DNA of 64,000 nt from Macrostomum lignano (lineage: Eukaryota). A model generated the notes under the pieces. That model was given only the letters and a program-made list of their open reading frames with translations, ran no database searches and was not told the origin of the DNA. Below, in pieces: positions 402 through 63,067 of this stretch (positions within the stretch are counted from its first letter, which is position 1; every line of letters begins with the position of its first letter). The DNA lies in assembly GCA_002269645.1 (NCBI GenBank), contig NIVC01000114.1:744001-808000 (forward strand), written 5' to 3'. Made by a program: the position numbers and the translations under genes.

Positions 402-3400
402 CAACAGCAATGCCAGCGGCGACAACAACTCCAGCAACGATTCTAATTATCGCTCCCACCGAAAGCACCGGAGCGGCAGCAGAGCACGTGGGCCCGGAGA
501 ACCCATCATTGCAATCGCAGAAATACTTGTTCCACATGTCGATGCAACGACCGGAGTTCTGACAGACACCCGCTTTACATACTACGTCTCCATGGCAACC
601 AGGCGTTGGTGAGATGGTTGAATCCGCGTCAGTTGCAGACCAGGAAAATCCCGGCGTGTCAGAGGGGAGCGACCGGTTCACTAGCGGGACCAAGTAGCCG
701 TTGAGTCGCACGTTGCCAAGGCAACCCTTGAAGCCGCTGTCGCCAAGAACTACCACAGCCGCAGAGTCGAGAATCAGCGGTGCAAAGTCATGAGATTCGC
801 TGAAAGTCGTAGCAGCGTCGGTGCCATCGAACTTCGCACTGAGTTCTAAGCGCCGTTCGGTGAAAAACCTGACGCCAAACGTAAATGGGATGCTGGTTGC
901 TATGGAGAAATCGGACATCACGTGCTTGTTGTCAAGGGACACTCGCAGATGGCCGGACTTGGCCTCGACAAACAGCTGGCGACCGTCGCGGTTGGTCATC
1001 GACAGCAGACGGAAGTTCAGCTCGCGGGTGCGGGCCCAGCCAGTGAGGCTAGTCAATGCTTCATTGAAGCGGCTGGCCGATAATCTCAGCTTTGTGGAGG
1101 ATTGGAATGTGGCGGCTGTGCGACCTGGCGAGTTTGGTGGATGGACAAGCATAAAATGCAGTCATTTCGTCGCCATTCATAGATATATTAAGAAGTATAT
1201 ATTCAGCTAAGAAACTGGGCGTCTGTATGAGTGCAAGCCTGAGTACAGTAGGTGCTCATGAGTCAGCGATATGGATAGAATTGCTTCAGGTTGAATGCTG
1301 CTGAAAGCGTTGCATCAGGGGTGTCACAAACCTCCTGTGAGTTTGACGCTGCAGTTTTTGCCTCCGAACTCAGCGGGGCAGCCGGTGCAGGCATAATCCG
1401 CTACCAGGTCCTTGCAGACGGCTCCGTTCTGACACGGCTGTCCGAACCGCTCGCACTCGTTGATGTCGACTGAGCAGGTCGGGCCTTCGTAGCCGGGCAG
1501 GCAGTGGCAGGTGAATGAGGCCAGGCCGTCCGTGCAGCTCGACGCGTGAGCGCACACGCTGCGGTTGGTGTCCGGATCCAGACAGTCGTTCGGGTGGATC
1601 TCGCACGTGTCTCCGAAGGTACCTATATGAGTGAAATGTGTTTAACAAAACTTGTTTGCGTTGGAAGCATTGTTTGACTGATGTTAACAATGTCGTGTCT
1701 CCGTCTACGTGTCACGCATGAATGCGTTTGATAAGAGCTAAACACCACACCCCAAGGGAAGGGAAGGCGGACGCGAGTGTTTGCGAGTATCGAGTACAGT
1801 GCGAGTGGATACGACGTTCCAAAATCCGAAAAATGATGGGGAAAATAGTGAAAGAAAAAAAACGGGGGGCACGCAGGATTCAAGCAAGCAATGCTTGCAA
1901 GGCTTGCAAGGCTTGCAAGCAAAAATAAATAAACAGTCATTAAAACAGCACTTAATCAATAAAACAACAGTCATCATTGCAAAAAAAGATAAAATACGAA
2001 ATAAGAATCATGCACGAGTTGAAAAGAAAAAATCGGAGCATTTGAGTCAAGCCAAAGGAAAAAGAAAGCAGACAGCACACCAGCTTCTACCCAGAGCAGG
2101 CAAACGAAAAATTATAGGCATTGAGACAGTTTGAGAACAGCCACCAGCTGGAGGTCGAAGCCCTTCTCCAGCCCCAAGTACACTTCAATCGCCGAGCTCC
2201 GCCAGTCGACCAGGGCCTTGACGACCGGCAGCGGCACACCGGCGCGGAACGCCAGCGAGGAACCGCCGCGTCGAAGGCTGTGCGGAGACAGAGACCGGTC
2301 TGCCAGGCCGGCACGGTGGACGACGTGCTGAAACAGGCGACAGAACCCGGTGCCGGTCAGAGGCGTCAGGCCGCCGCTGCTTCGGTAGGCGAAGAGGTAG
2401 GCAGCAGCAGAGGTGGTCAGGCTGGTTGATGCGCAGGTGGTGAAGCAGCGCCGCCACCGGGCAGAGCGGGTGCTGAGCCGCGTGCCGGAGGCGCGGCAGG
2501 ACAACGCGTTGCACTCGCTGGCGGAACTGGTTCGTCTTGGAGCGCCGAATGTGCAGGATGGCCAGGTCCGGTGATAATTGCAGGTCGCCACATGTGACCG
2601 CCTCGCCAGCTGGTGGGAACGGTTTCGAGCAGCACAGATTGGCCCCGCCAAGGAGGCCCCAGAATCCGACCAGGACCGCCGCCCAGAAGGCTGCATCTTG
2701 AGGCTGCTGCAGGCGCAGGGTTCCTCGCAGTTTGAGGAGGTCACCCGGAGTGATGGGCGCCTTGCGCGCCGGCGGCTTGGCGAGTTTGCGCTGCACACCG
2801 CGGAGGAGCAGGTCGATGCGGGGGTCGCGAGGAAGGCCGCGGCCGGTCGTGAGCTTGCAGTGCAGGTCTGCGGCGTTAATGTACGCACCGACGCTGGCAT
2901 GCAAGGAGAGGCGGTCGGACAGTGCGATGATGTAGTGCGCGACCTGCTGCAGAGACGGTCTGGTGCTGTCGATGCGCATCTGCTTGCAGAACCGCTTTCA
3001 GGAGTCGATCTGGCAGCGGTAAGAGCGCGCGGTTGTCTCAGCGAAGGCCAAGTGGCAAAGGTCGCGGTAGCGCTTGCTGAAGTTCGCGCTCGGGACTTGA
3101 GGCGGGCGATCTGTAGGGCGAGAAATTTGCAGGTGGCTGGCGAGAGGGTGTGCTCTCTAAGGTTGCTAAGGTCAACGTGAATAGAGCCAAAGAGCTGGAA
3201 CAGGAAGTTTGTCAGCTCGCTGATGTCATCGGCTCGGCTGCCACTATCAGCGAAGATCTGGAATGTCCCGGGGACGTGGAAGGCCTGGACGGAGAGGTCG
3301 CGGTGCGCAGCGAGAAGCATCAGCTGTTGCAGAGCCGAGTTGACGACCCGATTTGGCGACGAGCCCTTGTTGATGGTGCCGACTGCGGCGGTGCTGTCAG

Positions 3401-6400
3401 AGTAGATCACAAGCTGGCTGCCCGGTTGCAGCTGCTGCTGGAAATGCAGGGCCGTAAGCCCTGGCGCGAGACTTTCCTTGAAGTTTGATGTGCAGCGGCT
3501 CGATCTCGGTTGAGTCGCGGTGCCAGTCCATGATGAGCCAGCTGGTGATGTCTGGGCGCGGATGATGCCGCAGCCGCCCCAGTTGGACGCGTCGGACTCG
3601 ATGGCCCAGCTGGGCCCGTGGGAACGCCAGATTTGCAGCTGGGGGAGGCGGCCAGGCAGGCGTCCCACCAGCTAAGGATCTCGCGGAGATCATTTTGCAC
3701 GCGCAGTTTGTGCCGCTGCTGCTTCAGGTCGCTGAGCTCGAGCAGGAGTGGTCTCAGGAAGCACCTCCCGATGCGGACCACCTGGCAGACCCAGTTGATG
3801 CGGCCACAGAGCGATTAGAGTTGGCGCTTGGTGATGCGCTTGCGAGAGAGCGCGGACTGCAGCTGAGACTTGGTGGCGTCGAGCTTGTCCTTCGGAAGCT
3901 CCAGTAGGCCGCTAACGGTGTCGATGAGGACGCCCAGATAGACCAGTCTGGTGCACGGCGCCACCACCTTGCTCCAGTTGATGGAGAAGCCAAGCTTCCG
4001 CAGCAGATTGAGCAGGGTGCTCGAGAGCGAGCGAGCTAGCAGTCGTCCTTGCTGGGGCTGCTATGGCGAAGTCGTCGAGATAGCTGCCGATATCGTTGAA
4101 GCCCCGTCTCTGCATCATGCGCTTGACGGCCTGGCTCAAGCGGTGGACAACTTCCACGGAGGCGGCAGCGCCAAAGGGGAGCCGCATGTCGCAGATGTAC
4201 GAATCGCTGCGCTGGTCGCTGAATTTTCACTTCAAGCCGGTGAGCCGAAAATCGTGCGGGCTGATGCCGACACTCCGGTAGGCATTGACGAGGTTGACTT
4301 TGGCCATGAACCAACTGGGTTGCAGTTAGGCGGTGAAGTGACTAACGGTCTCGAACTTGATTCGGTAGTCGGAAGAAAATCGGCTGTTTAAGGAGAGACC
4401 CGGAGGGTTAGAGCAGTCGTGGATGAGTCGAATCTTGTTGTTGCTCTTCGGAATGGCGTCAAGGGCGCTGATGACCTCCGGTTTGTCACTGACTTGAACG
4501 TAGCGGCCATTAAGGATTTCCTCTCGCACCTGCTGCTCGACCAGCTGCCGGTAACTGTTGACTGATACGTACATGTAGTTCTGGATTTCTGACTAGTTGA
4601 GGCTCTTTCTGACGGGTCAGGGCAGGTGAGTTGGAAGCCGTTGCGGATGCCATTCAGCAGGAATTCGCGGTCAGGATCGTCAGTCAGCTCAGTTTCCCAG
4701 GCGGCTGTGGCGAGGTCGGATGAGAAAGCAACAGGGGTTCGACTTTGGCTTCCGCCGGGGCAGCTGCACTGCCAGTTGAGCCCCCCGGCCGGCCGCGATC
4801 TAGTTTTTTGAAGTGCAGAACTGGCGCGGGTGCGCCTTGTAGCAGGCGGAGCAGACGTGCCTGAACTTGCAGTCGCGCCGTAGGCAGCCGTTGCGGTTGA
4901 ACAGCTCCCGCCCCTCAGGATCGATCGGGCCGACGAAGCCGGACAGCTGCTGCTTTGGCCAATGGGCTTGAAGTTGGTGCGCTGAGGGATCGCGTTGCCG
5001 GCCTGACTTGACTTTGGTGCCAGAATGTGCTTGGATAGCAGCTGCAGCGACTCCCTGAGGATTGCAGATTGAGGTTGCAGGATCCTGAAGTCTTCATCGT
5101 AACAGTTGAGGGCGGCCTGACTGAAACCCTTGGTGCGTAAATGCGTAAACTCGCCGAACTGCACACAGTAGCGAATGTAGGCTTTCAGCTGTTCAAGATC
5201 CACCGCGCCATCCTTAACGGTGAGCTGGGAACCCTCGTCGAGGAGTTTCAGCAGGATTCGGTTGCTGCCTGCTACCCACTGAACCTCCGAGATCTGCTCA
5301 GTCCGGACTCTGGACTTCTCGCCAGAGGCGCGCTCCTCGCCATCACGGTTGATAAAGTCCTTCGCCAGAAGGGGCTTTGACGGTCCCGACGGCCTGGCAG
5401 AAGTGCTGTAGAGGCCTTGATGGCCCAGGTCTGGCAGTCCCAGCTCCGGCTCATAGGCAGCAGGGGACCGGTCAATCGGCAAGGGGCTCCGCAACTTACG
5501 GCTCTGTTGACAAGGCTTGTTCTCCAGCTCAGCCTCGATCTCAGCAGTCTGGCGTTGAAGAGTCCTCAGCCGAAGCAGCTTCTCCTGACGGGCGATCCTC
5601 TGGTCCAAATCGTCGGTGCCCTGTGGGGCGCCAGCCTCGTCCAGGGTCGCTACCTCATCGTCGTCGCTGCTGCTGGTGCTGACTCGGTCGATTTCGCTCG
5701 AGTGAGTGGCTGTTGGCCGTCCACGTCGCTTGGCTTGATTTGAGAAACTGGCTTGTTCCAGTCTGACTTGCAACTTTCGCTTGCGACCGCCCCTGGGCAG
5801 TCCCAGTTGGCGCAGACGGTCTCTAAGCTGCCTTGCAGTCATTTGGTCAATTGAAATCTCGGCCATTGCAGTTGCAGCCTAGGCAGCACTCACGCCACTC
5901 CGTACGATAAAAAAGTTCATGCAGCGCGAGAAAGGTGAGGCAGGCTGAGTAAAAGCTAGGTGATATAAACCTCACGGCGGAGGGGTGCAGCGCAGAGGGG
6001 GGGTTGACTTGGGGTAGGTGTTTACAACCAATCAGAAAACGCCGATTGGACATTTTAATTTAAGCTTAAAGCCTATTCAACAAGCCGACGGTCAGTCTAA
6101 CTTTAATTAAAAATAAAACACAGCCAGTAAAAGGGACAGATGAAAAGAAAATTCAAAACAATAGGAAACAGACACCAGCTGCAGACATCAATTAACTGAC
6201 CGCCAGAGGAAAACCCATGAGAAGGCATAATTTGCGAGCTCATTAGATATCCCAGCGGAAAAAGAATCCCGTCATCAAAGAAGATCGGCCGAAGAGTTGG
6301 CTCTGCACACCGCCCTAGGGGCTTGGAGGCTTACCAAGTGAGAAGCGACTCCTCACTACGAGAACAACAACGAAGCCCGATGGCTTGAAAACCGAGGATT

Positions 6401-9400
6401 GCAGAGACAACATTTGAACTGCTCAACTGACAGGTGAGAGAGCCAGAAAAGTTACTCAGATTAAATCAGGCCTGTGGCCGGATACCAATCTATTGCCAAT
6501 ACGATCAAAACGAGCAGAGCTTTTTCAAGAGAACAACTCAGCTGAAATAATTAGACGATCGAGTAAGTTTTCTGAAAATTCTCCGAAGGCCTTTTAGGTA
6601 GTGAGAAGAACCGATAGAACCTTTAAACCGCTAGACTGTTCATATGTGGACCTCCTTACCATTTTTGCAGAAGCAGACGAACCCGGCAGCCAGCGCGTAG
6701 CTGAAGCTGTCGTTGAACGGCGCTGGCAGCGACGAGTTTCCATACAGAGCCGGGTTGCTGCGCTCCAGACAGGCGCCACCGAACCGGCACGGATTCGGCG
6801 AGCAGTCCGGCACGTCAACGGAGCAGTTTTTTCCCGAGTAGCCGCTGAAGCAGCTGCAGCTGAAGTCTCTGAGCTCGTCAGTGCAGGTGGCGTTGTGGCT
6901 GCACGGGTTGCTGGCGCAGTCGTCAATGCAGCTCTGGCAGTTCGGTCCGTAGAAGTCGGTGGCAGAGCAGTCGCAGGTGAACCTGAAAAGACGAAGTTTG
7001 GTTTGTCCCGCATTTTTTGACTTTTTAATATCTGAATTGTACACAATTGGCAACAATTTAAGTTTTCGATTAGGTTTTGATTCTTGTTAGCGCAACTTTT
7101 TTTTAACAAATGCACTTTTAAATTCGCATACTGAAGAAAAATATGGCCGGTCGGGGTTGAATCCTTGTAAAACTTCTGTCAGTCTTGAGAGCCTTTTGAG
7201 CGAAATTCAATAAACTAAACTAGGCTGTGTACTTAAAAAAGCGTTTCTTTTTTATAAGAATAAGGACAATCCACTCGGAAGGTGTGACCAGCGTTGGCTT
7301 AAATCAATACTTAGGTATTACAGCTTGAATATTTCCAAACATACGCATGGTGTGTTGAATTTTATCAATCTGACCGAGAATTTATTGGAGCAGGGTAGTG
7401 CACCAAAGCACATGATGCAATTCAGAGTTTAAATCACTTTGAGCAATCGACAGCTTGCAGCTGAGGCAAAAATGCAAGCATCTTTCAGAGCCATGCTGCA
7501 TGGCAGCTGATTCTCTGGTGACGGCTTTGTGACAACTCAAAATAACGCCCACAAAACGCTTAAAATCTAACTTCCAGCTCCAAGAATACCGATAACTAAT
7601 TATATGTAATGTTAGAAGCGAACCTAACCTAATGTACGTCAGGCACTGAGAACCCAACAACTGAAAACCCTGCTTCGAGCACCCAGCATCAAGCACCAAA
7701 CTACAACCCAACCCGAAAAACCCAACTAAAACCAAACCCCAAGCACCAAACTACAACCCAACCCTAAAACCCAACTAAAACCAAACCCAAAGCACCCAAC
7801 CCCAAGCACCCAAACCCAAGCACCCAACCCCAAACACCAAAACCCAAGCACCCAATCCCAAGCACACATAAACCCAAAGCACCTGCAGCGAGAACTCAAC
7901 TCCAAGCACCTAGACCACAACCGAAAACCAAAAACAATCCAACCTGAAACACCCAATCCCAACAAAGCCCCAAGCACCCGATCACAATAATTAGCAACCT
8001 GAAGCACCCAATACAGCCTATCCTAAAGCATTCAAGGCCAAGCACCTAAGAACATTCCAACCATTAACTCCCAACCACAACTAACATCTCAGCAGATACA
8101 ACTTCAGCACGATTCAGAACTGCAAATATTATCCCAAGGAATTAAGAACTCAATCAGCTTTGAGCCACTCACGTTGAGTTTCCGTCACTGCAGACGCCGC
8201 CATTCTGACAGGGCCCTGACAGGCAGTAGTCAGTGTCCACTGAGCAGTTCCTGCCCTCCCAGCCTGTGAAGCAGCTGCAGCTGTAGTTTTTCACCAGATC
8301 CGTGCACAGGCCGTTGGGGCAGGGCTTGCTGGCGCAGTCATCAATGTTGTTTTGGCACCTGTGACCTGCGAATCCCGTGTCTGTGCAGTCGCAGGTGAAT
8401 CTGAAAAATAAGCAGAAAACTGGGCTCTAATAGCAACAGACATGCTCCAAGTATTTCTATTGACGGCTTCTGGTGATAAATTTTATTCACTGTTGCAAAC
8501 GACGGTTATGAAACTCAAAGTAAGGTTTTATAGTTTCTGAATTCCAACTACAATGAAGTCAGCTGAAATATCAGCAGAAACCGACTAAGATCGCAAATTT
8601 GCTAAAGGCATGGGTGGTAACCGTGGCCCATTCAAGCCAGCGAGCACTTCATCTGTGAATGTCCCGCTTATACTCAGGACAGGCTCGTCAACCGCGGCCC
8701 AAACTCGGACCTTTTCAGGAAAACGACGACGCTGAGGACACCACAGCACCAAAGGATAACACAGCACCAGCTGCCCGTGATCGTCTAGGGTTGGTGGAAT
8801 GGGTGGCGACGCCTTCCCACCGTATCTGGAGGCCCGGAGCCCCCCTGCAGCTGAGTGAAGTCAAGAGGGTAAACTCACGTTCCGTTGCCATCAATGCACC
8901 TGCCGCCATTGAGGCATGCGCTCACTGAACAGTCGTTGTGGTTGATGCTGCAGTTCCTGCCCTCCCAGCCTGTGAAGCAGCTGCAGCTGTAGTCATTCAC
9001 CAAGTCTGAGCACAGGCCGCTGGCACAGGGATTGCTGGCGCAGTCATCAATGTCGATCTCGCAGTCGGTGCCTGCAGCAGATTAAAAATTCGAAAGGGAG
9101 GAAAACAATCAAAGCATTCAGTTTAACTGCTGCTGCGCGAATGCCGTCGTGGCTGGCTTTTGTGGTGACTCCAACCGGGCAGTTAACAACTAATATTTTA
9201 CAAAGGTGAGAATTGACTTTTTACGATCGTAGCTTTTCCGTATTTTAATTTTAAAGCGATGGCTTGGATTACGGAGAGGGAAAATGAAAACAAATCGTCA
9301 GAGCTGGAGGAATTCTGAGACTTGATTGATGACGCATCTAAGAGGATGGAATGGTCTTGTGAGTTGGTGGATGAGCTCTGTGTAAGATGATGGATGGATT

Positions 9401-10036
9401 CTGTGAGATGATGGATGGGATCTGTGAGATGGTGGATGAGATCAGTGAGGTGGCTGATTGTATGGAATGACATTGGTTTTCTGAGGCAGACAATCAGATA
9501 AGATTTGGCCATTTTTCCGAAGCGATTTTTAGCTTTGGTACAAGCCTACTCGTATTATGTTTTTTTGATATATATTTTGATTAAATTTCACGAAAAAAAA
9601 TTATTTTAGTTAAAATAATTTTAGACAGCCTTTACTGTTTAATTACGAGCCGTAAGTTAAGCTGTTTCAATTTTACAAAGCTATTTTGATATTACTAGGT
9701 TTTTTAATTTTTAAAGTTTTTCATTTTGATTTACAGCGGGTCACCCACCTGTGTAGCCGGAAACGCAGCTGCAGTGATACCAGGGGCTCGCGTCTGTGTT
9801 GCTGCAGGTGCCTCCGTTTTGGCAGGGATTGCTTGATGAAGTGCTGCCATCGGAGGTTGTAGCACAAAAGTTTATTCTAACAGTGCAATAAGTACCAGTG
9901 TACGCCTCAGTGCACAGACACGGAGGAGTGCTTGACGTCACAGCACCCGGCCAGCAAATCCCTCCATTCTTGCAGTCGCCTTTGCTGCAGGCGGCTCGCC
10001 TCGTCCGCGCCAATTCGTTGGCGTCCTCGTCAGAAC
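402..10036 (-). CDS. Crumbs-like paralog A (EGF x~11, single LamG, TM); first exon not found, internally deleted, continues past the left edge; may be a pseudogene
   Basis: Hand-spliced exons 9749-10036, 8879-9071, 8173-8400, 6660-6982, 1332-1622 (putative cryptic donor) and 402-1124, with GT/AG ends and consistent phases. Encodes Ca-binding-type EGF repeats, the Crumbs-signature EGF (CLERSNPALYG..FSYALAAGFVC), LamG3-EGF and a TM start (AIIRIVAGVVVAAGIAV). Near-identical to gene B exons. Confidence 0.75.
2112..3110 (-). pseudogene. Tyrosine recombinase (YR) of the DIRS element, disrupted
   Basis: RKAPIT, LHIRRSKTNQF, LCPVAAL, HSLRRGG and W..SAIEVY motifs. Frameshift near 2400, in-frame stop near 3000, and GLLGGAN where the first catalytic Arg (GLLR) is expected. 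Confidence 0.85.
3180..4760 (-). pseudogene. Reverse transcriptase / RNase H of the DIRS element, disrupted
   Basis: DREFLLNGIRNGF, IPKSNNKIRLIHDCS, LPFG, YLDD, VYLGVLID; RNase H motifs ESDAS..KE..YSDS..ADSGSR. Spread over several frames with internal stops. Confidence 0.88.
4800..5866 (-). pseudogene. gag-like ORF1 of the DIRS element with an N-terminal SAP-like motif and a C-terminal zinc finger (frameshifted)
   Basis: N-terminus DQMTARQLRDRLRQLGLPRGGRKRKLQVRLEQ resembles SAP. A second frame at about 4800-4905 reads LFNRNGCLRRDCKFRHVCSACYKAHPRQFC. Confidence 0.75.
6100..6600. repeat. Diverged intronic sequence shared with 20170-20530 (paralogous intron; possibly an old retroelement relic)
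   Basis: Visible similarity, e.g. gcagacatcaattaactgaccgccagaggaaaacccatgagaaggca vs gcagacgccaatacctgactgccaaaggtaaacccaggagaaggca. Confidence 0.45.
7680..8060. repeat. Degenerate C/A-rich minisatellite (caagcacccaacc core)
   Basis: Same core as the arrays at 23240-24130 and 25620-25870 in the paralogous introns of gene B. Confidence 0.75.
8610..8865 (+). mobile_element. 3' fragment of a CCHC-ending LINE (same family as 43820-45910)
   Basis: gagcacttcatctgtgaatgtcccgc (EHFICEC) and the 3' UTR cagctgcccgtg...ccccctgcagctgagt match the reverse complement of 45560-45615 and 43820-43930. Confidence 0.75.
9370..9460. repeat. Short 21-bp minisatellite (gatggatgggatctgtgagat type)
   Basis: About 4 units; expanded counterpart at 26720-27430 in the equivalent intron of gene B. 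Confidence 0.7.
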
Positions 10037-12660: not shown

Positions 12661-12679
12661 GGGTTGTACATGCCCGGGG

Positions 12680-14324: not shown

Positions 14325-30023
<15,699 letters not shown>

Positions 30024-42028: not shown

Positions 42029-42064
<36 letters not shown>

Positions 42065-42645
42065 TGCTTAAGAAAATTACTGCAACGGATGAAAACGAAG
42101 TTTTTACCTGTGTAGTTGATGCTGCAGCTGCAATTAAAGAAAGGCTCTGTCTCTATGGGACTGCATAATCCGCCGTTTAAACAGACTGGCAACGAGTCGA
42201 TACCCATATCCGGTTGCAGCTTGCTGCAGTAGTCATCTGTGACGCTGCAGTTGTCTCCTGAGTAGGGCTTCGGGCAGGAGCAAACCGGCTCGCTGCTGTT
42301 GCAGATGCCACCGTTGAGGCATTCCAAAGAATCACAGGTTTCCCTGCGCTGTCGATTTAGCAAGGAAAAGTCATCGACTCCTGGGTATTTAATGAGGCGA
42401 TTGCAGCTGAAAAAATGCTACATTACTACTTAAAAGGTAAACAAACGAATTTTACTCAGTAAATAAAAAATGAGCTAAAATGAGTTTATTTCGATAAATG
42501 GATACCATCTATGCATACCATCAGGATCAAGCTGCTGTATCGTATCCTTTGCCGATCCAGCAGCCGAAAGCAGGCAGAAGCAATAACTGAAGCCAATTAC
42601 GATTGCTGATAGATTTGACAGGTAGCTCCGGTGTCGTGAAGACAT
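35349..42645 (-). CDS. Crumbs-related receptor E (signal peptide, RQRR, 5 EGF + truncated Crumbs-signature EGF, TM, ~290-aa tyrosine-motif tail), about 636 aa
   Basis: Exons 42519-42645, 42108-42380, 41810-42002, 40988-41316, 38833-38945 (TM), 38680-38733, 37501-37704, 36568-36651, 36222-36488, 35641-35742, 35349-35513; 1911 nt in frame. Tail motifs DYIDE, TYVDM, TYEAP, VYMVA, PPALPIR, TVYDTI. Confidence 0.8.
35810..36180. repeat. 24-bp minisatellite (acacaaactgagacactcacacag)
   Basis: About 15 units in an intron of gene E. Confidence 0.9.
37790..38575. repeat. 15-bp minisatellite (caccaggggctttag / caccaggggcgccag)
   Basis: About 50 units in two variant blocks, inside an intron of gene E. 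Confidence 0.92.
40061..40957. mobile_element. hAT-like non-autonomous element carrying a 23-bp minisatellite (tattatggcgccactctagtgta)
   Basis: Termini cagtggtggatttcag / ctgaatccgcctctg are inverted repeats; flanks cttggtgg / cttggttt (6 of 8 match); about 30 internal units. Confidence 0.65.
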
Positions 42646-48301: not shown

Positions 48302-51300
48302 TTAGAAACGAGCGATTTTACTTGAATCGACTCTGGCCGGTAAATCTATTTTTGCTGCTTGCGGTTGCTGCTGTCCACCAGAAGAATCCGGCAAACTGGT
48401 CGGGTGATTATCGAGCTCATCATAGACATTTCCGGGGTCTTCCAGATTAGCGGCTGACTCTTCAGCGGTCTGAAAAAATACAATTATTATATGTATGTAC
48501 GATACCTGTGTAGAAATAATCTGATTATATAATAAACTCCCATACTGCTGGTTGTAAACCGGAAGTTGCGGGATCATCAAAAGCCCGAAGAAATTTTCTA
48601 TATGGTCAGTGCGTTATCGGGCCCTGAATAATGACTGCATCAGCATCTGGCTCTGGGCTGGCAAAACTGCGCAACAAAAACTGTAAACGTTGGCATAAGC
48701 GCGTAGCAAAAGTAGCAAATATTCAAAATTGTCAAAATTGTAAATCGGCACTTTGAACATCAGTCACGCGATTTGATGGCTTATTTGATGGCGGTGTGAA
48801 CAATAGCTATGAGAATTTGTGACTTTGGATGTTATACTGCAGGGCTCGGCAAAATCCGGCCCGCGGGCCACACACATGTGGCCCCTTCTATCCTCTCCTA
48901 TTCTCTTTCCTTTCTTCTCGCATTTCATCAATTCTCTTCTCTCTCCTCTCTCCTCTCACCTATCCTCTCTTCTCTCTTCTCGCCTATCATCTATACTCTC
49001 CTCTCTACTCTCTCCTCTCTCCCCTCCTCTCCTCTTTCCGCTCTCCAGTCTCCCCTCTCCTCTCCTCTCTCCTCTCTCCTCTCTCCTCTCTCCTCTTTAC
49101 TCTCTCTTATCTCCTCTCCTCTCTCTTATCCTCCTATCTGGCCCTAAGATAAAAATGTTTGTCGACTCCTGTTTTGCACGAACAAATCCTGCTCTCATCT
49201 CAGTCGGACACTAGATACCACTGGTTTATAAAAGCAGTAGACATTACCCATGAACCTTTTGCACAAATTTTCACTTCGTATTATGATAAAATGTAAATAC
49301 AGGTAAAAATAAAAAATCGAGACGATTGAAAGCTACTAAAGTTACCATATTGACTTGTCCTTAACTTCATTTCTAACATAATTAAGATCTTACCAACAGC
49401 TGATTCTGAGTTCTCATTGCGTGCCGCTCTGGAAGAGGGGGCGGCACGCTTGACTGCTGCCGCTGCTGCTGCTTCTGCGGTTTCTGCAGGTGCCTCGGCT
49501 TCGGGTTCGGTTTTGGCTTTGAACCACCACTGGTTGGCGGCTTAGATGGGGGCTGATCCGGTGGCTGAGTTGCCTGACTCGATGACTGGTCAAGCGGATT
49601 GTCCGGACAGGCGTAGAATTCGTCCAACTCAACGGGCTGCAGAAGTGAGTTCAAGAAACGATTGTAATTAATCACTAATTTGTTAGAATTTGTTCTATTT
49701 TGAAAATTAAATCAAAGCTAGATCTATTGGGCTGATATTTTGATTTCTTTTCAGCTGTTAAAACGAATTTTATTGTAAATGACGCAAGTTTCTCAATGGT
49801 ATTATGGATTTTACTGACGATATAGATGGCAAAGCAAGACAAAAACAATTTCTATAAGCGCAAATATGAAATATTTATCGTCAATTTGATGTTTTTTTAA
49901 TCATTTTTCTAAAAGCGTAAAAAAAGTTTTTCTCGAGGGGGGGCTCTCAGCTCTACGGTACTAAAAGTAGTCTGATGCGAACTTGAATTTTATGAAACTC
50001 AACTTCAAACTGTACTTCATAAAAATTGAATTTTATGAAGTACAAAATCACAATTTTTCATTGAAAAAATCTAATCATAATTCATTGTAAAGCGGAAATA
50101 AGAATATTTACCGACTACCACCCACTGTACGCCCCACTTAGTTGTCCCACAGGGTATGAGACGAAAAAAATTTGCTGAACGAGAAAAAATCGACATCATT
50201 ATTTTTCTACTTACGTTAGAAGCAGTTGTGTTTTCTGACAGCTGCTGCTCTGCAACTGGTTCCGGAGTCTGGTGTGCATCCGGTGCAACGTAAACGTCAT
50301 CAGCTGATTCACCACCATCGGCAACTAGGTCTGAATCCGGTGTCTGATTTGCATCCGGTGCGCAGTAGAAATCATCACCTGAGTTGCCGCCAAAATCCGC
50401 TGCTTGGTTTTCTTCCTGCAGTTTTTTTTAAATTAATTGACCAAGTGTAGAGAAAAGCGGAGATTAAAATTCAAGCGTTGAGTATTGATAGGTGAGTGAT
50501 TCTTTTGATGAAGACACAGCTATAGTAGAACCATGGACTCTAAAACTATATATGATACGCTCATACTCCTAAAAATATATTTAAAAGATTTGTTCAGCCC
50601 AAGAGTCGAATAGTTCATACGAGGTTCAGAAGCTTTAACAGTCAATCAAGTCTGATGTACATGAGAATATCAAACATTTATAACTGGATGTTCATTAAAC
50701 CCGCTTAGGATGGCTATAAACAGCTATTTCCCTAGAGCCTTAAAAACAAATGCAGAATTTACCTGATCTTCTCCAGTTGCATTCGGATCAGCTTCCTCAA
50801 CCGTATTTTTGAGGCCAGAAGTGCCAGCCTGAGAGGCTGACTGACCGGCTGCAGCTGGGGTTGTCTTCAATAGCTTGCGTAGCTTGGAGCTGGTCTTGCT
50901 TATTAAGCTCATTTTAGCGCTCGATTTAGGATTTTCCTCTTTGGATCGCTTTTTTGATTTATTGTCTTCTTTGTCATCTGCTGCCGCTTGCTGCTCATGC
51001 TGCTCAGTAGATTGGTCTATGTCATTCGGAACAATGTACACTCCACCAGACAGATCATCGGATGCATGAGGTGTTTCTTGAACTTCATTTCGGACAGGTG
51101 TCTCCTGAACAGTAACACGCAGGTATCATTATAAAATCTCAAACTCCTTTCCCGAGGATAACACTTAAAAGTCTGTTTTTTATCTGCATGAAACGCAACC
51201 AGCTTTACCTACTCGTAACTTGCAGACAATGTCCTAAGCCAATTATTTAAAGCAATAGGCATTGACATTGACTAACATTTCACTTTCTTTTCCAAAAAAC

Positions 51301-52843
51301 TGTCACAGTGAGGTTTAAAGCAGCCTTTCTGAAAGACTATAGCGCAAGCAGTGTGTAACAGGTGTTCTAATCCTGCTGCTGTAAGGGCATGAGTGAGTTT
51401 TCAGTCTTTGTTCAGTAAATAATAGTTCACTTTTTTGTTCGCGAATTAATATCTTCCGCTGTCACGCAGGCCAGACTCACTTACCTCGGGCTAAACACAC
51501 CAATTACCGAATCGAGCAAACTCGAATATATAAACCAGCTCATGCGAAACTGGGGGGACCTCCCTGGACGGCGCCAACACTCTATCCTTCCGGAATGGGC
51601 GCCCGGGCCTTTCCGCTGTGTCCCACTTGGAGCTGTCCTGCAGCTAAGTCAAGATAAGTTCCTAGTTTATAGAATCAAAATATACATTAATTGATAGTTA
51701 AACTTGCTTTTTAAAAAAATATTTTAATGTCAAAATTAATCCGTAGCTACTTATTTCAGAGGTGATACACGCATGGGCACTATCACAGATCGGAGTTGAA
51801 CACACCCAGTAAGACGCACTTTTAGGGTAGAGTCAATTACCACAGTTAGATATATGAACCCGATATAATCTGCAAGCATCTTCGAGACAAAAATAAAACA
51901 AAGATAAAAATAACTTACATGAACCGATTCGATTTGCTGCTCAGCAACAACAACGGAGCTCGCATTAGTGCCGCTCATGTCACCCAATTCTTCATCGCCG
52001 GTATTAATTCCTGCGTTTAAATATGCAGTCGCGTCAATATAATGATGTCCATCATTCAGAGCCGACTCGGTACTATCTGGCCTTTTGTTTCGTTCGGCAA
52101 CGTCAGGCTGCCGACATATCAGTTTGCCCTAAAAGTGTTAATTTCGGTTTGCCATATTTTAGTAAGATTTTTATTAAAGGGACTGCCATATTTTGTAAAC
52201 AAATAATATATACAATGGTACCTTTCTAAGCAGCACGACGAATAGAACGACAAGTGCGATTAAGATAATCCAGCCCAGTAATCCGACAATTCCAACTGCG
52301 ATAGCTACGTCTTTTAAATTTTGTCCGCCTGGAACTTTAAATTTTTTCAACTTTGTTAGAAAAAATAATAAGAAAAATAGTTATTATTTAACCACGTAGC
52401 AAAGCATGTCTACTGAACAATTCTTTGCGTAATTAATAACTGACTTATGGAAGCTAGAGTTAAAAAAGCAATTACGAGAATTGATACCCATCACAGGCAA
52501 CACTTCAGTGTGGTCATCAGTGATGTTGCACGCGTCCCCAGAGTAAGGCCATGGGCAGGAACAGAACGAGTCGTTACCAGTGTCGTTGCAGACTTCACCA
52601 TTGATGCACTCGAAACTGCCGCAGGGCGTTGTACTCGGTTTCGAATCTAAATAGATAATAAAGGCATAAACTTCGGCTAGTCAATGTCTCCAATTCAAAG
52701 CTTACGACCTAAAATTTACACAGATTAAATCTAGATAGACTAGCTTTGTACTAACCAGCATGTTGCCCAACAACAGAAGCCGCTGCTATAATCAACAACA
52801 GACAAAGAAACTCTTGATTGTTCGCTGGTAGAAGTTGCCTCAT
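48302..52843 (-). CDS. Single-EGF transmembrane adaptor-like protein D with a ~390-aa YxxP/PxxPxR tail, about 507 aa
   Basis: Exons 52756-52843 (signal peptide), 52488-52646 (EGF), 52222-52334 (TM), 51919-52128, 50763-51104, 50215-50415, 49394-49636, 48302-48469; 1524 nt in frame. Tail motifs HYID, VYIVP, FYCAP, VYVAP, FYACP, PPPLPER, NVYDEL. Confidence 0.8.
48840..49171. mobile_element. hAT-like MITE with a CT-rich interior
   Basis: cagggctcggcaaa...cggcccgcgggcc start and tttgtcgactcctg end (11 of 14 inverted match); no TSD recognised. Confidence 0.5.
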
Positions 52844-57021: not shown

Positions 57022-60000
57022 TCACGCGAGCTGGATTGAACTGAACTTGGCTGAATTGTTACTCAAATTATCGTAGGTGTGGTCATCGGTCGACGTTTCA
57101 TATACACCAGCATAAGGCGATTCTGCCGCTTCAGTCGGCTGACCTCCAACACTGAGCTGCTGCAATGCAATTAGAATTCATATCCAAGTAATATTTTTAG
57201 CAATGCAGCAGAACCGCCTTATCGTTCAAAGGGAAATATCTTACATGCATCCGAATGCGGTCATAATCAGCAAAGGTGTAAGGAGTTTCGTCCTCTGTGT
57301 CAGGTTCCGGCGTGCATTTACCCTAGGAATTAACGAATCATAGAATACAAATTTAATAATAAACATAGCAGTATTAAACGATCATAACATTTATCATAAC
57401 AAAGCACTACTAAAAAAAAGAAGCTTACCTGAACAAAATCTTCTTGTGGCGGAGATGGCGCACTGCTTGTGAAGGAACCTTTACCCTGCAACTGACTCCT
57501 CTAAAATTGAAAAAAAAACTCAAGATTGTTACTCAATCTATGTGGCTCGTAGACCTACACCCGTAATTCATACCAATCAATAAACATACATGCCACTACA
57601 ACTTACCGATCGATATCGAACAATGAAAAGAACAATGCCACATGTAAAAGCCGAAGACAGTGTTACACTGACCACAACCAAGATTGAATAGAAACCAATT
57701 GAGCCGACAAAACCAGTTGAACATTCTGATGAAGCTAAAATACGATGTGCGGGCTTAAGATAAAATGAATCGTCTTAAAAACTGTACACAGGATAAACTT
57801 AGTGCGAAACCTACCATGCGATTTCAAACACAGATAACCATCAGCTGTTTCGTACTTAAATGACCCGTTAAATGGCCACGGAAGAGTTTCATGGTTATAA
57901 TTTGCCGAGTGGCTTCTCTCTAAACACACTTCGTCGCTACCGCACGGATTCGGGCTGCATTCTGAGTTGTCAATTGAGCAGTCCGTTCCAGAATAGCCGG
58001 GGTGGCACACGCAACTGAAAAACGTCTGATTGCATTCAAACTCAAGCATTATATAATAGTGCCATAAACAGCGAAAAATACTCACGAAGCCATTGACGAA
58101 GTGCACGTTCCTCCGTTTCTGCATGGCAAATATACCTCACAAATATCAAGCGACGAGCTCAAGACGACACCTGAAGACTCACTGGCTGCCATTGCTCCTG
58201 ACAGAGCAAGATAAGATGGGGAAGAACTCAAAATCAGTGGCTTTGCCTCATTCAATCTCGGATGGGAAATTATTCCCCGAAATCCAGTCACGCCTGAAGG
58301 CATCGCAGCCCAGATGCTGGCTGGAAAAACAGGCAGAGATCGCTTTGATCTGCCGCCGGTGCTTGGCGGTGATGCGCCGCTGAAGCCGCCGATGATGAGC
58401 TGGCCTGACAGCTGCGGCAGCGGACTCGCACTGCTCAGCGATGCCGACCTGACTGAAGCTGACACTGACAGCGACAGCGAGCGACCCGATATCGACACGG
58501 AGATCTTTACGGAGACGAAGCTGCCGGTGGCCACCGAGTCTGAGGACGTCAGCGCTGCGATGAGGGAGCCGTTGCTGTGCAGTAACTGGGCGGACAGACG
58601 GCCAGAGTGATCAATCTGAAAAGAATAAAACAAATACTGACTTTACCAGATCTCACTCAATCTAGAAAAAAACACTGAGGACACTCACTGTAACGAGCAG
58701 TCTCGGAGTGGTCGCCGAGTCGCTCGGGTCGCCCAGCAGCAGCAGAAACGCTCCTCGAGACAAAGTCACCAGCCTCAGCTCAATCGTCCACGAGTCTCCG
58801 CCATACACACTTGACACACCTGCTGCAGTCGCGAAGCTCGCTGATGACACGCTGCCGCCCACACCCAGTGAGAACGATGGAAGCTCAAAGGAGCAGCGCA
58901 GGCCTCCGAAGCCCGTAACGCAGTGGCACACAAAGTCGTTCCACACATCTGAGCACATCGAGCTCGTCTTTGCTTCACAAGGCGACGGGCTGCCGCACTG
59001 CACCGACCGACTGCAGACTCCCCAGGTCGCGCTGCTCGACTCCGCCGTGGTCCCCGAGGCGACCAATGTCGAGTCGTTCGACACGAGCCGCAGGTCTCTC
59101 ACGCAGCCGCGGAAGCCGCCGCCGCCGTCGATGCCGGATCCGCTCTCGCCGCCGACACGAACTGACATTCGACTGTTCGGCTTGAATGAGTCTGACAGTC
59201 CGTCGACCAGCTGTGCTCCAGGCAGCTGACTCACTCCTGACTCACTGCGACTCAATGTCACACTGCCATTGGTCAGCGAGACCGACAGCGTCAGCCAATC
59301 AGTAGAGGCCAAGCTGTGACTGATTGGCCAATCGGCTCGACCAATCACAGACGATGAGGCATTGAAGAACAACAGCACGAGACTGGAGTCGTGAGCGCCG
59401 ACTCGGATGTCTCCCCAGTGAGACGAGAGCCGGACCAGATCGAAGTGGGCGAGACTCGTGCGGAACGACAGCTCGAAGGTGCAATCAGTTGTCGTGCTCA
59501 ACTTGGAGCTGTCCAGCAAGACTCTGAAGGCCGTGCTTCCGTTGAATGACGCCAGAGTGGTATCGTTGCACTGCGGTCCAGACCAGCCAGGCTTGCAGGT
59601 GCAGCGATAGCCGTGAGCAGGTGACGGCAGCTCGCGAAGAAGCAGCGCCTCGCACTTCTCATTCATTTGGCACGGGCTGGAGTCGCAGCCAGTCAGTCTG
59701 ACGCTGCAGTTTTTGCCTCCGAACTCAGCGGGGCAGCCGGTGCAGGCATAATCCGCTATCAGGTCCTTGCAGACGGCTCCGTTCTGACACGGCTGTCCGA
59801 ACTGCTCGCACTCGTTGATGTCGACTGAGCAGGTCGGGCCCTCGTAGCCGGGCAGGCAGTGGCAGGTGAATGAGGCCAGGCCGTCCGTGCAGTTTGACGC
59901 GTGAGCGCACACGCTGCGGTTGGTGGCCGGGTCCAGACAGTCGTTCGGGTTGATCTCACATGTGTCTCCGTAGATGCCTTTGCGTTGCAGTTAAATAAAG

Positions 60001-63000
60001 GAATAATTGCTATAGATTAGAATCATTACAGTCGATACAGTCAATGCACAGGATCTCCTTACCTCTTGGGCAGAGGCAGACGAACCCGGCAGCCAGCGCA
60101 TAGCTGAAGCTGTCATTGAATGGCAAAGGCAGCGATGAGTTTCCATACAGAGCCTGGTTGCTGCGCTCCACACAGGCGGCACCGAACTGGCACGGATTCG
60201 GTGAGCAGTCCGGCTCGTCATTGGAGCAGGTCTTTCCCGAGTAGCCGCTGAAGCAGCTGCAGCTGAAGTCTCTGAGCCCGTCAGTGCAGGTGGCGTTGTG
60301 GCTGCACGGGTTGCTGGCGCAGTCGTCAATGCGGCTCTGGCAGTTCGGTCCGTTGAAGTCGGTGGCAGAGCAGTCGCAGGTGAAGCTCCTGACACCGTCG
60401 ATGCACCTGCCGCCGTGCTGGCACGGACTCGATGCGCAGTCATCGATCTTGGAGCTGCAGGTGTCGTCTTGGAAGTCGACGCGAGAGCAGTCGCAGGTGA
60501 ACCTGCATTTATTTCAGCATTTTAATGAGAGAAAATACAAAACGAAAACAGAGAAATGAAACAATTTTTTGAACTAAAAAGAATGCTTAGTTCGGGATGA
60601 ATCATCAACGATGGAAGATAATAAGTAATATTTTTTTCGCATTTTGACACATTTCTTCCTCTACTAGAAGAGAATTAGCAAGTATGATTGCTAATCAGAA
60701 GAAAATAACGCTGTCAGAATATCTAATGGTTGAAATATGATTTATCTGTCCATTAAATCTTGTTTTCAGTAGAAAAATTGAAGGAATTTATAACTTCAAT
60801 AGCATGCATATCGGGGAGGGTAGCAGATATTTTGTACTTCAAAATTCTAAGTCAGGGTTATCTAAGTATTTTTTTGTTTGTTTTAAACATGATTTAGGTA
60901 ACCCCTTCAATTTTAACCTTTCTTCTAAGTAAAATTCTCTAAAGATTTGTTTTAGAAGACTTTTGACTACTGAATCTTGGAAACATTTTGCTTCCAGCGA
61001 TAAACAAACAAAAAGAAAGCTCTTTTTCCGATCAAGGGCCTGAAGGAAAGAGAAGCTCAACTCAAAGCAGAATTCGCTGAATGGCTTCACTGCAAAGCCC
61101 AGATACTAGAATAACTAGATGGGCCACTCAGGCGCATATACTTAGTAAAACAGCCTTCTACTTCAAGTTCAGTAGAAAAGAAAAATGCAAGAGTGCATAA
61201 GCAATTTTTTTTTAAATAAAGGTAGCTGAAAGACTTTGATAAGCTTAGAAGCCCAAGCTTGCAGGTGTAAACAATTTGCTAATTGGTTCAGCAATATTGT
61301 ACTTTAGCCAGTCCACTGTAATTTACATGGCAGCTTTAGGCTGGAATTCCGAGAAAGGCAATAAAAATTGGGGCGGGGCAGGGGGTTAAAGCTGGTGGGT
61401 AAGAGCCAATAAATGAGCCTTGGCTTTAAAAGTGCATTAAAATGCTTCTTTAAATTTCTACTGAACAGAAAGTAGCTTCCACGCAAATGTGCTGAGTGGC
61501 CCATCTAGTTATTCTAGTATCTGAGCTGCAAAGCGACGTCCGCAAGACAACGAAGGGATCAGACTCCCGGTGAGTGGTAGGATTCGTTTGGCAAACGTAT
61601 TTTTGAGTGACAGAGGCCTCAGCTTCTAATGATCAGGCACTGGGATGTACTTAGAAATAGATTTTCCATTAGTGACGTAAGGGTATTGATGCCAGTATAG
61701 CTACTCTGTTGATGGGGGCAAAGCATGGGAAGTTAAGTCCTGAATCACTGCCGTTTGGCGATTTTATTTTCAGTACGAGCGTACGCGCCAGCCTTGCGAC
61801 TGCCCCACATCCCATACTGCTGTGATTGGCTGACCAGCCCGAAGCTGTCTGCAACCAGCTGTCTGCAACCAGCGGTCTGTAACCTCGTCTGACCTCTGAT
61901 TGGCTATTGTTTTGGCTATTGGTTAAAATTGGACCCAAATATAAGGAGATGTGTGAGCAGCGGGCAGGGCATTGGCCTTCGCTTCTAACCTGAAATTGGC
62001 TCCTGCATACCTGCATACTGTACTTTACAATCGTAGGTACGGACTGATAATGTCTCTCAAAGCGATCCCACGTTCGGAATTCGAAGTCAGTCAGACCAGG
62101 CTGACTGACGCCATCAAGTTCTCGTTGCTCTGAAGGTCTTGCAGAGAACTCCAGTATACGATCGATTAAACGGCTGCGTTACAACACCAGATCTAGGCTT
62201 CGATCGCACACAATTCATGCCATATGGTGACTAATGACGGCTGCTCCAGCATGATGAAGCTTGATGGAGTGCTGTTAGCGCAAAACTGAGTCTGTTGGCA
62301 ACACACTTGATGTCACCAACTAAAATGAAATGCGACGGCGTCAAAAAAAAGAATCCACAGCGGCTTTTCTCATTTAGTGCTCACAGCCGAACCCTGAAAC
62401 CCGAGCCCATGCTGACAGGGCCAACTTTAAAAAAAAACTAGCCTGATATTTTGCACAGTACTCAAAGCTTGCCATCAGGTCACCTTCCTATGTTCTACAG
62501 GTAAGCTGCCCCCAAATGACCCGAGCTTACAAGAGTTGTCGATCAGTTGGAAGAGCTGGTTGATACTGATGCTAGAGGACCCAGGGCGAGATGCTCAGTT
62601 TAAAAATGAATTACAAGCATATATTTGTCTACCTCTTGTTTGTTTTCACGCAACAATAAGTTGCTTGATGATAAGAAAGCTCTATCTAACTACGAGCTAA
62701 AATTTATAAAATTTTCAACATTACCTAAATTAAAAAAAAACAGAATCTTTGCAATGCAGTGAAATCTATGGTAAAACTTCCAGAGGCTTTGCGCATGTCA
62801 GAACGCATCTGCAGCTCTCCAACAGCTCAGAATACTCACGTGGAGTTCCCGTCGCTGCAGACGCCGCCGTTCTGACAGGGCCCTGACAGGCAGTAGTCAG
62901 TGTCCACTGAGCAGTTCCTGCCCTCCCAGCCTGTGAAGCAGCTGCAGCTGTAGTTTTTCACCAAGTCTGAGCACAGGCCGTTGGTGCAGGGCTTGCTGGC

Positions 63001-63067
63001 GCAGTCATCAATGTTGTTTTAGCACCTGTCACCTGTGAATCCCGTGTCTGTGCAGTCGCAGGTGAAT
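57022..63067 (-). CDS. Crumbs-like receptor C, 3' part (EGFs, LamG1, EGF, LamG2, EGF, second truncated Crumbs-signature EGF, TM, tyrosine-rich tail); 5' exons beyond the window
   Basis: Exons 62840-63067, 60063-60502, 58689-59977, 58086-58615, 57815-58014, 57607-57734 (TM), 57429-57500, 57245-57322, 57022-57159, all phase-compatible. Tail motifs PYTF, DYDRI, PYAGV, VYETS, TYDNL; ends IQLA*. Confidence 0.83.
61098..61525. mobile_element. Young MITE with 34-bp TIRs and a perfect 8-bp TSD
   Basis: Perfect 32-bp inverted repeat cagatactagaataactagatgggccactcag (61100-61131 / 61492-61523); TSD ctgcaaag at 61090-61097 and 61526-61533. Confidence 0.85.

Follow-up and report, generated by a model that had tools for sequence, protein, structure and literature searches.

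A tandem array of probable Crumbs-derived paralogues with diverged cytoplasmic tails in Macrostomum lignano

The cytoplasmic tail of Crumbs, 37 amino acids (aa) long, is among the most conserved parts of the animal polarity toolkit, from sponges to mammals; the ectodomain is poorly understood. A different set of single-pass receptors with EGF-repeat ectodomains, CED-1/Draper/MEGF10 and PEAR1, carries unstructured tails in which NPxY, YxxL/M and proline-rich motifs recruit PTB, SH2 and SH3 proteins. In Crumbs, a FERM-binding motif (RxxxGxYxPS) and a PDZ-binding motif (ERLI) form the signature of the family (PMC5968619). CRB3-CLPI, a splice isoform of mammalian CRB3, is reported to have a C-terminus without ERLI and partners outside the polarity complex (PMC2064851). 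Here we describe a stretch of 64,000 nucleotides (nt) from the genome of the flatworm Macrostomum lignano, called the window below. Six neighbouring genes in it, named C, D, E, F, B and A in their order from 63 kb downward and all located on the minus strand, encode membrane proteins with EGF and, in part, LamG domains. They are best regarded, on well-supported sequence grounds, as lineage-restricted paralogues derived from Crumbs.

The window belongs to contig NIVC01000114.1 of assembly GCA_002269645.1 (Mlig_3_7), and a position in the record equals 744000 plus the window position; positions given without a contig or locus name are window positions. The fetched NIVC01000114.1 locus is 100% identical to window 64000-47022. 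The GenBank annotation of Mlig_3_7 is a genome-guided RNA-seq transcriptome (StringTie/TACO) combined with experimentally defined transcript ends (PMC5730564). The assembly contains 180 Mb of blocks duplicated at 95% or more, which is expected from the karyotype (PMC5730564).

Relationship of the window genes to Crumbs

A regular-expression scan of the window detected 24 six-cysteine EGF motifs, and all 24 lie on the minus strand. Self-BLAST showed exon-sized blocks common to A, B and C at 88-96% nucleotide identity, with the introns between them unaligned. An earlier sequence-only reading of the window had proposed six same-strand genes with homologous exons, and both results bear this out. 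A long-loop EGF with the pattern C..C..C[LV]ERS..Y....G[FY].C, called the signature EGF here and used as an empirical Crumbs marker, occurs six times on the minus strand and never on the plus strand. It is found by regular expression twice in C (60207-60076 and 57959-57828) and once each in E (41138-41007), F (33441-33301), B (22109-21978) and A (6804-6673), exactly the distribution that had been proposed; D has none. In other animals the signature EGF co-occurs with …PPEERLI ends in at least 11 proteins.

The exon of A and B that encodes LamG3, an EGF and the transmembrane (TM) segment served as query of an exhaustive HMMER search, which mainly returned proteins ending GTYSPS…ERLI. The nearest relatives of this LamG3-EGF-TM exon are two M. 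lignano proteins. The first, P0127/P0273 (BOX15_Mlig013136g1), is the canonical M. lignano Crumbs and ends …RRKESGTYGPSKAE…PPEERLI, with GTYGPS present; the second, P0276 (Mlig011649g2), ends …GQYRPSKEE…PTEERLI. In a trimmed alignment the identity is 49% to P0127, 40% to P0276 and 22-27% to Crumbs of other phyla, and in a neighbour-joining tree (no bootstrap support) the A and B exons group with the M. lignano proteins. Over ~250 aa the ectodomain of E is colinear, at 34-39% identity, with Xenopus Crb2 and with Crumbs proteins that carry ERLI, one of them from a nemertean. The best match of D is E, signal-peptide region included, and F matches the signature-EGF region. A 446-aa minus-strand open reading frame (ORF) at 18755-20095 matches M. 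lignano proteins at 86-92% identity, and its best named LamG-covering match outside the genus is Xenopus Crumbs 2. The derivation from Crumbs suggested by the sequence-only reading is thus upheld by the signature EGF, the EGF/LamG architecture, the ERLI endings of the best outside matches and the 49% identity to the canonical protein.

The canonical gene is itself close to a copy of the array. On NIVC01001242.1, P0273 is encoded at 4193-9463 (plus strand) and a second copy of the cluster occupies 84266-110937 (minus strand). Canonical Crumbs is therefore found ~75-100 kb from that copy, with at least one other EGF gene between them, near the canonical gene. The canonical LamG1 exon (L006 on NIVC01001242.1, 2548-3813) is 94.4% identical in nucleotides to the big exon of B (20002-18754), and the start of the canonical LamG2 exon (L006 4073-4320) is 96.8% identical to C (58621-58374). 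Nucleotide identity of 94-97% over LamG1 and LamG2, set against a protein identity of ~49% over LamG3-EGF-TM, makes these genes mosaics, which points to gene conversion or to an exchange of exons among family members.

The tails are where the window genes depart from Crumbs. No ERLI-type end (E[RK][LI][IL] followed by a stop codon) is present in any of the six frames of the window, nor is G[TS]YxP or RxxxGxYxPS in a Crumbs-tail context. The five visible tails accordingly lack GTYSPS and ERLI, as had been claimed; they end in SIQLA (C), KIARF (D), KLEKF (E), FHKA (F) and QEVFF (B). Counted from the TM segment the tails measure ~20 aa in F, 45 aa in B, 99 aa in C, 309 aa in E and 389 aa in D. 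The length that serves as a criterion for Crumbs tails (<40 aa) is exceeded by C, D and E, and the tails of B and F are short. Crumbs function is defined by the FERM- and PDZ-binding motifs (PMC5968619), and since both are absent here, the window genes are regarded as Crumbs-derived and not as functional Crumbs.

Gene structures and copies of the array

The predicted proteins have a type I single-pass layout. A hydrophobic N-terminus and one TM segment are present in each of B, D, E and F, and a TM segment also in A and C, the 5' ends of which are unseen; signal peptides and TM segments were read by eye as hydrophobic stretches. The full layout of EGF domains with three LamG is found in B only, while C has two LamG, A has one, and D, E and F have none. 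In the spliced models the ectodomains range, as had been proposed, from one EGF in D to 17 EGF and 3 LamG in B (17 modules by hand, 15 by a strict regular expression). Exon coordinates also confirm two proposed shared exons. The third exon of 193 nt, bounded by AG...GT, is found in E (42002-41810), B (26488-26296) and A (9071-8879). The phase 1-0 TM exon of 113 nt is found in E (38945-38833) and D (52334-52222), and in D a 107-nt variant also exists through an alternative acceptor, starting at 52328.

The in-window part of gene C (57025..63075, minus strand) encodes 2 LamG, two signature EGFs and the 99-aa tail. Its exons are ~63075-62837, 60502-60063, 59977-58689, 58615-58086, 58014-57815, 57734-57607 (TM), 57500-57429, 57322-57245 and 57159-57025, the last followed by the stop codon. 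The 3' 747 aa were rebuilt exactly, as the partial protein P0001 (BOX15_Mlig017317g1), from seven GT-AG exons, and the upstream in-window exons were placed by homology to B. The start is located beyond the right window edge, at ~68.8 kb in window-equivalent numbering. GenBank divides C into a 334-aa gene and P0001.

Gene D (48305..52843, minus strand) encodes a signal peptide, a single EGF, a TM segment and the 389-aa tail in an intact ORF with GT-AG introns. The exons are 52843-52757 (signal peptide), 52646-52477 (EGF), 52334/52328-52222 (TM), 52128-51919, 51104-50763, 50415-50215, 49636-49394 and 48469-48305 plus stop. The 5' exons were read directly in the window, and those from the TM exon on were placed by projecting the P0121 model, exact on L003, onto the window. 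The GenBank D gene (521 aa, window 55380-48302) begins ~2.5 kb upstream of the ATG used here (52843), and our reconstruction has 509-511 aa.

Gene E (35352..42645, minus strand) encodes 651 aa with ~6 EGF including the signature EGF, a TM segment and the 309-aa tail. The GenBank model P0123 (651 aa) was rebuilt exactly on L002, a locus on NIVC01001242.1, from 12 GT-AG exons and then projected onto the window: 42645-42519, 42380-42108, 42002-41810, 41316-40988, 38945-38833 (TM), 38733-38680, 37704-37501, 36787-36740, 36651-36568, 36485-36222, 35742-35641 and 35513-35352 plus stop. The exon sizes are 127, 273, 193, 329, 113, 54, 204, 48, 84, 264, 102 and 162 nt. All 11 introns of the window copy are GT-AG (11/11) and the 651-aa ORF is intact.

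In the RNA-seq-based GenBank models P0001 (C), P0121 (D) and P0123 (E) the EGF and TM exons are joined to the new tails. Splicing of these exons to the tails is therefore shown, for C in the window and for D and E in nearly identical copies from other contigs; a failure of transcripts to join them had been named as grounds for abandoning the original proposal. The tandem array itself is real. NIVC01001242.1 is colinear with window 52400-25576 and NIVC01001300.1 with 58644-38396, at 90-97% identity including non-coding DNA. The GenBank genes on NIVC01001242.1 follow the order of a D-type gene, E (651 aa), F (186 aa) and B (1473 aa). On NIVC01001300.1 a partial D (414 aa) is followed by the start of E, in the order C-D-E.

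Gene F (31283..34262, minus strand) is a 199-aa model of four exons with GT-AG phase-1 junctions, read directly: 34262-34193 (signal peptide), 33633-33559 (small EGF), 33470-33267 (signature EGF) and 31533-31283 (TM, tail of ~20 aa and stop). The homeologous 186-aa GenBank gene is found at the corresponding place on NIVC01001242.1.

Gene B (14328..30023, minus strand) is the largest, with ~1398 aa, ~17 EGF, 3 LamG, a TM segment and a 45-aa tail ending PQEVFF. Its 10 exons (~30023-29927, 29859-29572, 26488-26296, 25022-24675, 22404-21965, 20025-18770, 17987-17413, 17321-17200, 15580-14858 for LamG3-EGF-TM and 14479-14328 for the tail plus stop) splice to an ORF without internal stop, and the homeologous 1473-aa GenBank gene on NIVC01001242.1 begins at the equivalent position. 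LamG2 was called by Pfam; for LamG1 and LamG3 the PDB gave matches to neurexin LNS-EGF units.

The tail exon of B (14479 down to 14328, minus strand) encodes AIVLVAKFTTLFRPSASSDLQSQSKLDPTTGVRVGHLRSKSAKPVPQEVFF followed by a stop. A phase-1 donor G|GTTAGT (last exon base 14858) is joined to the acceptor CAG|C at 14479, which matches the UniProt model P0126. The exon completes the TM helix (…AAGIIVAIVLVA) and then reads KFTTLFRPSASSDLQSQSKLDPTTGVRVGHLRSKSAKPVPQEVFF-stop. The C-terminus of another paralogue, P0004, is …GVRVGHLRPDGMPPCPQEVFF, with the motif GVRVGHLR…PQEVFF as in B, and the C-terminus of B is thus conserved within the family. BLASTP placed its …KPV–PQE opposite the canonical …PPVRPPPEE, and EVFF retains only the E-x-hydrophobic-hydrophobic pattern of ERLI. 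On account of the length and the PxE-x-hydrophobic-hydrophobic ending, the tail weakly suggests a Crumbs tail that has degenerated, losing both the ERLI consensus and the FERM-binding tyrosine, and not a foreign one.

Gene A (402..10036, minus strand) has 11 EGF and 1 LamG. Its exons, 88-96% identical to those of B, are ~10036-9749, 9071-8879, 8400-8173, 6982-6660, 1622-1332 and 1124-402 (LamG3-EGF-TM). A first exon was not found in the window, and the tail exon is off the left window edge. From a new donor, G|GTTTGT with 1332 as the last exon base, A splices in phase 1 to the acceptor at 1124. This junction fuses the start of the B-type big exon to the LamG3 exon, and LamG1 and LamG2 are lost in frame.

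A block of ~110 nt 3' of the A and B TM exons (290-182 and 14740-14625) was considered as a terminal exon and rejected: 2-nt and 1-nt indels interrupt its reading frame, and it would encode an implausible product. For B the exon at 14479-14328 was preferred, because it extends the TM helix, gives the tail a basic first residue and is the one chosen in P0126. The block lies on the minus strand in the last introns of A and B, is ~88% conserved between them with the flanking intron unaligned, and has no further copy in the window; it could serve as an alternative exon or in regulation. Stops (TAG TAA) directly after the TM exon would make a tail-less isoform of A and B possible.

The family extends beyond these copies. 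NIVC01000038.1:172875-196742 (L004) holds an older, more diverged paralogous cluster with exons 74-96% identical. It encodes P0003, a C-type protein with a different tail (YEMAPYDVI, SAYDVIPDL), and a 1313-aa isoform, and the family is thus larger than the window shows.

Several repeats surround the genes. A DIRS-like retroelement (2112-5866, minus strand, GC 58-62%) is located in the ~5-kb intron of A; it comprises a reverse transcriptase box SYLDDFAI (ORF 3912-4187), a weak Phage_integrase match (ORF 2112-3668) and a SAP-domain ORF (4388-5866). Further transposon-like ORFs on the minus strand are found between B and A (11900-12830, with a weak rve match at 12387-12563) and between D and E (43300-45900), and the fused ab initio models P0122 and P0124 of UniProt incorporate the latter element. 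Pfam gave only weak matches to these transposon-like ORFs (Phage_integrase, SAP and rve), and an Rfam scan of the window gave no match. Minisatellite arrays with a 15-nt unit at 32749-33150 (F intron) and 37796-38576 (E intron) are inverted copies with ~93% identity. Other intronic minisatellites are at 21029-21448, 23270-24129, 27055-27429, 28636-29127, 30731-31183, 31741-32310, 35813-36201, 40172-40899 and 46123-46421.

Cytoplasmic tails, selection and alternative explanations

The tails of C, D and E are long, of low complexity and disordered-looking, and between paralogues they are unalignable in bulk. Pfam found no domain in them, and no kinase domain was matched in C, D, E or F. When 5.8 billion proteins were searched by word index for homologues of the D and E tails, only four matches came back, all from M. 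lignano; these tails are not conserved orthologues of a family already described. The tails of D and E align with each other colinearly, with 25% identity (pairwise E=0.03), and share conserved islands: Y.AP[DN] in an acidic context ([DE]x[FVI]Y.AP[DN]), PPPLPER/PPALPIR at the end of a K/P/Q-rich stretch, VYDELDN/VYDTIEN and the last residues. The C tail shares a TYDNLSNN-type motif with the YDx[LI] islands of D and E. It cannot be aligned to the tail of its older paralogue P0003 except for YxxAxYDxI. Bulk divergence with short conserved islands suggests disordered tails of the kind that typically work through linear motifs.

Candidate motifs are YTFADYDRI, YAGVYETS and YDNL in C; YIVP, YCAP, YVAP, YACP, PPLPER and YDEL in D; and NPRY, YVDM, YDTI and PxxPxR in E. 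YxxP accounts for four of the seven tyrosines in the D tail. Crk/Nck/Abl SH2, p85 SH2, PTB and SH3 domains classically prefer YxxP, YxxM, NPxY and PxxPxR. The tails had been described beforehand as replaced and tyrosine-rich. Tyrosine richness holds for C alone (6.1%, against 1.8% in D and 2.6% in E), and replacement does not fit B, with its resemblance to a degenerate Crumbs tail.

We consider it reasonably probable, and no stronger, that this is an extended Crumbs locus, in which the canonical gene was retained elsewhere, an array of paralogues derives from it and the C, D and E tails dock adaptors. The array would have arisen from canonical Crumbs within the flatworm lineage by tandem duplication. 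Duplication and loss of internal EGF exons would have followed: B would have gained EGF pairs, A would have lost LamG1 and LamG2 in frame, and E, F and D would have kept only N-terminal EGF exons. The 3' exons would have been replaced or have decayed, and exon exchange with the parent gene would be continuing. All six products would be single-pass type I membrane proteins, with signal peptides seen in B, D, E and F, and none would be able to engage those Crumbs partners that need the FERM-binding and PDZ-binding motifs. The tail islands of C, D and E would dock SH2, PTB or SH3 adaptors, or sorting adaptors, and contacts of the EGF/LamG ectodomain would be coupled to an intracellular output other than apical polarity. 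Tyrosine phosphorylation, adaptor docking and the biological role of the tails are what we infer from motifs, and it is plausible that C, D and E signal by docking of the phosphotyrosine/SH3 type.

The alternative that survives best, an unlikely one in our judgement, is that the array is evolutionary debris. Young tandem duplicates would have been truncated and rearranged and would be drifting to pseudogenes, and their tails would be read-through of non-coding DNA with no selected function. In favour of debris are a neopolyploid, highly duplicated genome with the 180 Mb of duplicated blocks mentioned above, a DIRS-like element within A, transposon fragments between genes, and tails with no homologue outside the species. 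Other observations speak against it. The six reading frames are intact over up to 12 GT-AG exons, the deletion in A is in frame, transcripts exist, and the motif islands of the D and E tails are kept in colinear order despite 25% identity.

Selection estimates (omega values from Nei-Gojobori counts between locus copies) also speak against debris for two of the genes. In E, window against L002, omega is 0.24 for the whole gene (p=6e-8), 0.145 for the ectodomain (p=9e-6) and 0.45 for the tail (p=0.044). In C, window against L003, omega is 0.25 (p=7.5e-4), with 0.27 in the ectodomain. Only 3 of 285 nt differ in the C tail exons, compared with 4.8% in the introns and 8.6% in the 3' flank, which makes these exons ~5-8x less diverged than the flanking non-coding DNA. 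C and E look like maintained genes under purifying selection.

A number of results weigh against the account of maintained, adaptor-docking receptors; those on D, on the omega values of A, B and C paralogues and on the 3' end of A and B also favour debris. In D, window against L003, there are 2 synonymous and 9 non-synonymous differences, in a comparison that is underpowered since the 3' half is identical, introns included. The D copy on NIVC01001242.1 (L002 2012-2211 and 2789-3030) has two 1-nt deletions in homopolymer runs of the tail exons, and its GenBank product is shorter (388 aa); the deletions are either a true frameshift or PacBio indel error. Omega is ~0.66 for the big exon of B against C and ~0.61 for the LamG3 exon of A against B, neither significantly below 1. 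The silent-site divergence of E between copies (7.4%, or 0.074) is three times its intron divergence (2.3%, or 0.023), which simple neutrality would not predict; ectopic exon conversion by paralogues may lie behind this excess and distort the selection estimates. The LamG3-TM exon of A and B, and with it their 3' end, is in no GenBank protein retrieved and appears only in UniProt ab initio models. With three near-identical copies in the assembly, assignment of RNA-seq to the window copy is uncertain. As to the tails, the low tyrosine content of D and E counts on the same side, and the motifs are short and derive in some cases from an internal repeat, hence are not independent.

A second alternative accepts the genes as functional receptors and assigns the tyrosine motifs to trafficking; we regard it as distinctly unlikely. 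The motifs would be YxxPhi signals for AP-2 or NPxY signals for PTB endocytic adaptors, and the proteins would be of an endocytic, scavenger or engulfment type like CED-1/Draper/MEGF10 or LRP. YDEL in D, YDTI, YVDM and NPRY in E, and YDRI and YDNL in C fit YxxPhi or NPxY, and the combination of an EGF-repeat ectodomain with a tail of this sort is typical of engulfment receptors. E combines NPRY with YDTI; the YDEL of D and the YDNL and YDRI of C come without NPxY, and motifs as short as these can occur by chance. Against this assignment, the best conserved and most repeated island, Y-x-A-P-[DN] in acidic surroundings, is not YxxPhi and is a better fit to the pYxxP preference of Crk/Nck/Abl-type domains. 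In addition, Pfam finds no EMI domain and no homology to the CED-1 family.

An immune-type cluster, with paired immune or self/non-self receptors in activating, inhibitory and decoy versions, is very improbable. The sequence-only reading had drawn this analogy, and a tandem array with ectodomains and tails of differing length, very short tails (F, B) included, does recall such clusters. The analogy is otherwise unsupported. No tail has ITAM spacing (YxxL/I-x6-12-YxxL/I) and ITIM/ITSM-like matches are only occasional (TVYDTI in E is ITSM-like). The TM segments contain no charged residue. The ectodomain values for E and C given above are purifying and not diversifying, no diversifying selection was detected in the ectodomains tested between locus copies, and ectodomain exons are homogenised with canonical Crumbs instead of being diversified. 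That some members serve as decoy forms is speculation. An assembly artefact, in which collapsed or mis-joined haplotypes mimic a tandem cluster, can practically be dismissed: the assembly is known to be redundant, but the gene order recurs independently on three contigs (D-E-F-B on NIVC01001242.1, C-D-E on NIVC01001300.1) and the six genes differ in architecture rather than being near-identical copies.

Beyond the account of an extended Crumbs locus with adaptor-docking tails, a more far-reaching proposal is possible, and we offer it as tentative and rather doubtful. The window genes might represent a new adhesion-to-signalling class of Macrostomum or of flatworms more widely, in which Crumbs ectodomain modules are combined with disordered, phosphorylated tails that recruit Crk/Nck-type SH2, PTB and SH3 adaptors. 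Such proteins would have been assembled by exon shuffling within the locus, and their ectodomains would be kept canonical-like by gene conversion. If this were true, the derived receptors could recognise the same extracellular partners as Crumbs and give another intracellular output.

Crumbs paralogues in Macrostomum are apparently undescribed: literature searches on M. lignano Crumbs, on the window gene identifiers and on EGF/LamG expansions in Macrostomum turned up no description. For now the result is one of descriptive evolutionary genomics, in a genome known for rampant duplication. Its value lies in the coexistence, within one genome, of canonical Crumbs and graded natural variants: B with a full ectodomain and a possibly degenerate tail, A and C with ectodomain deletions, D and E as EGF stubs with long new tails, and the nearly tail-less F. 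The series is a ready-made dissection of the Crumbs ectodomain uncoupled from Pals1/PATJ and FERM proteins. Transgenesis and RNAi are established in M. lignano, so the variants can be tested. The locus also offers an exon-resolution record of how a receptor family would be assembled by tandem duplication, exon loss, 3'-exon capture and ongoing exchange with the parent gene.

Comparison with known systems

The closest relatives are the Crumbs proteins themselves (Drosophila Crb, vertebrate CRB1/CRB2 and the canonical M. lignano protein). The window proteins resemble them in the type I layout, in interspersed EGF and LamG domains and in the long-loop CLERSN…Y…G[FY]xC EGF. B has the full layout of EGF with three LamG, and the LamG1 and LamG2 exons of B and C are 94-97% identical in nucleotides to the canonical ones. 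They differ in that the five visible tails lack RxxxGxYxPS and ERLI and that the tails of C, D and E have 99-389 aa instead of fewer than 40. D, E and F furthermore lack LamG, and D retains a single EGF that is not the signature EGF.

The receptors CED-1/Draper/MEGF10 and PEAR1 are useful as a working analogy only. The likeness is in the E tail, with its NPRY, YVDM, YDTI and PxxPxR. In contrast to the CED-1/Draper/MEGF10 group, the window genes lack an EMI domain and a laminin-type EGF array and share no sequence homology with it (Pfam detects only EGF/hEGF-type domains), and D has no NPxY.

An independent case of a Crumbs-like ectodomain joined after the TM segment to phosphotyrosine-signalling hardware is found in amphioxus. 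P0204 (of the Branchiostoma floridae XP_035688087 family) consists of 3 LamG, EGF repeats, a TM segment and a tyrosine-kinase domain, and in the LamG3 tree its LamG-EGF region groups with an ERLI-ending Crumbs. Unlike the flatworm tails, which have neither a kinase nor any other Pfam domain, that of amphioxus carries a catalytic kinase domain.

Within the Crumbs family itself, CRB3-CLPI arises from an alternative last exon of one gene and has a short tail (PMC2064851), whereas the window contains separate genes whose ectodomains are remodelled and whose tails are long and novel. This isoform and the like, the departures from the ERLI tail that are known, are much smaller changes than the one seen in the window genes.

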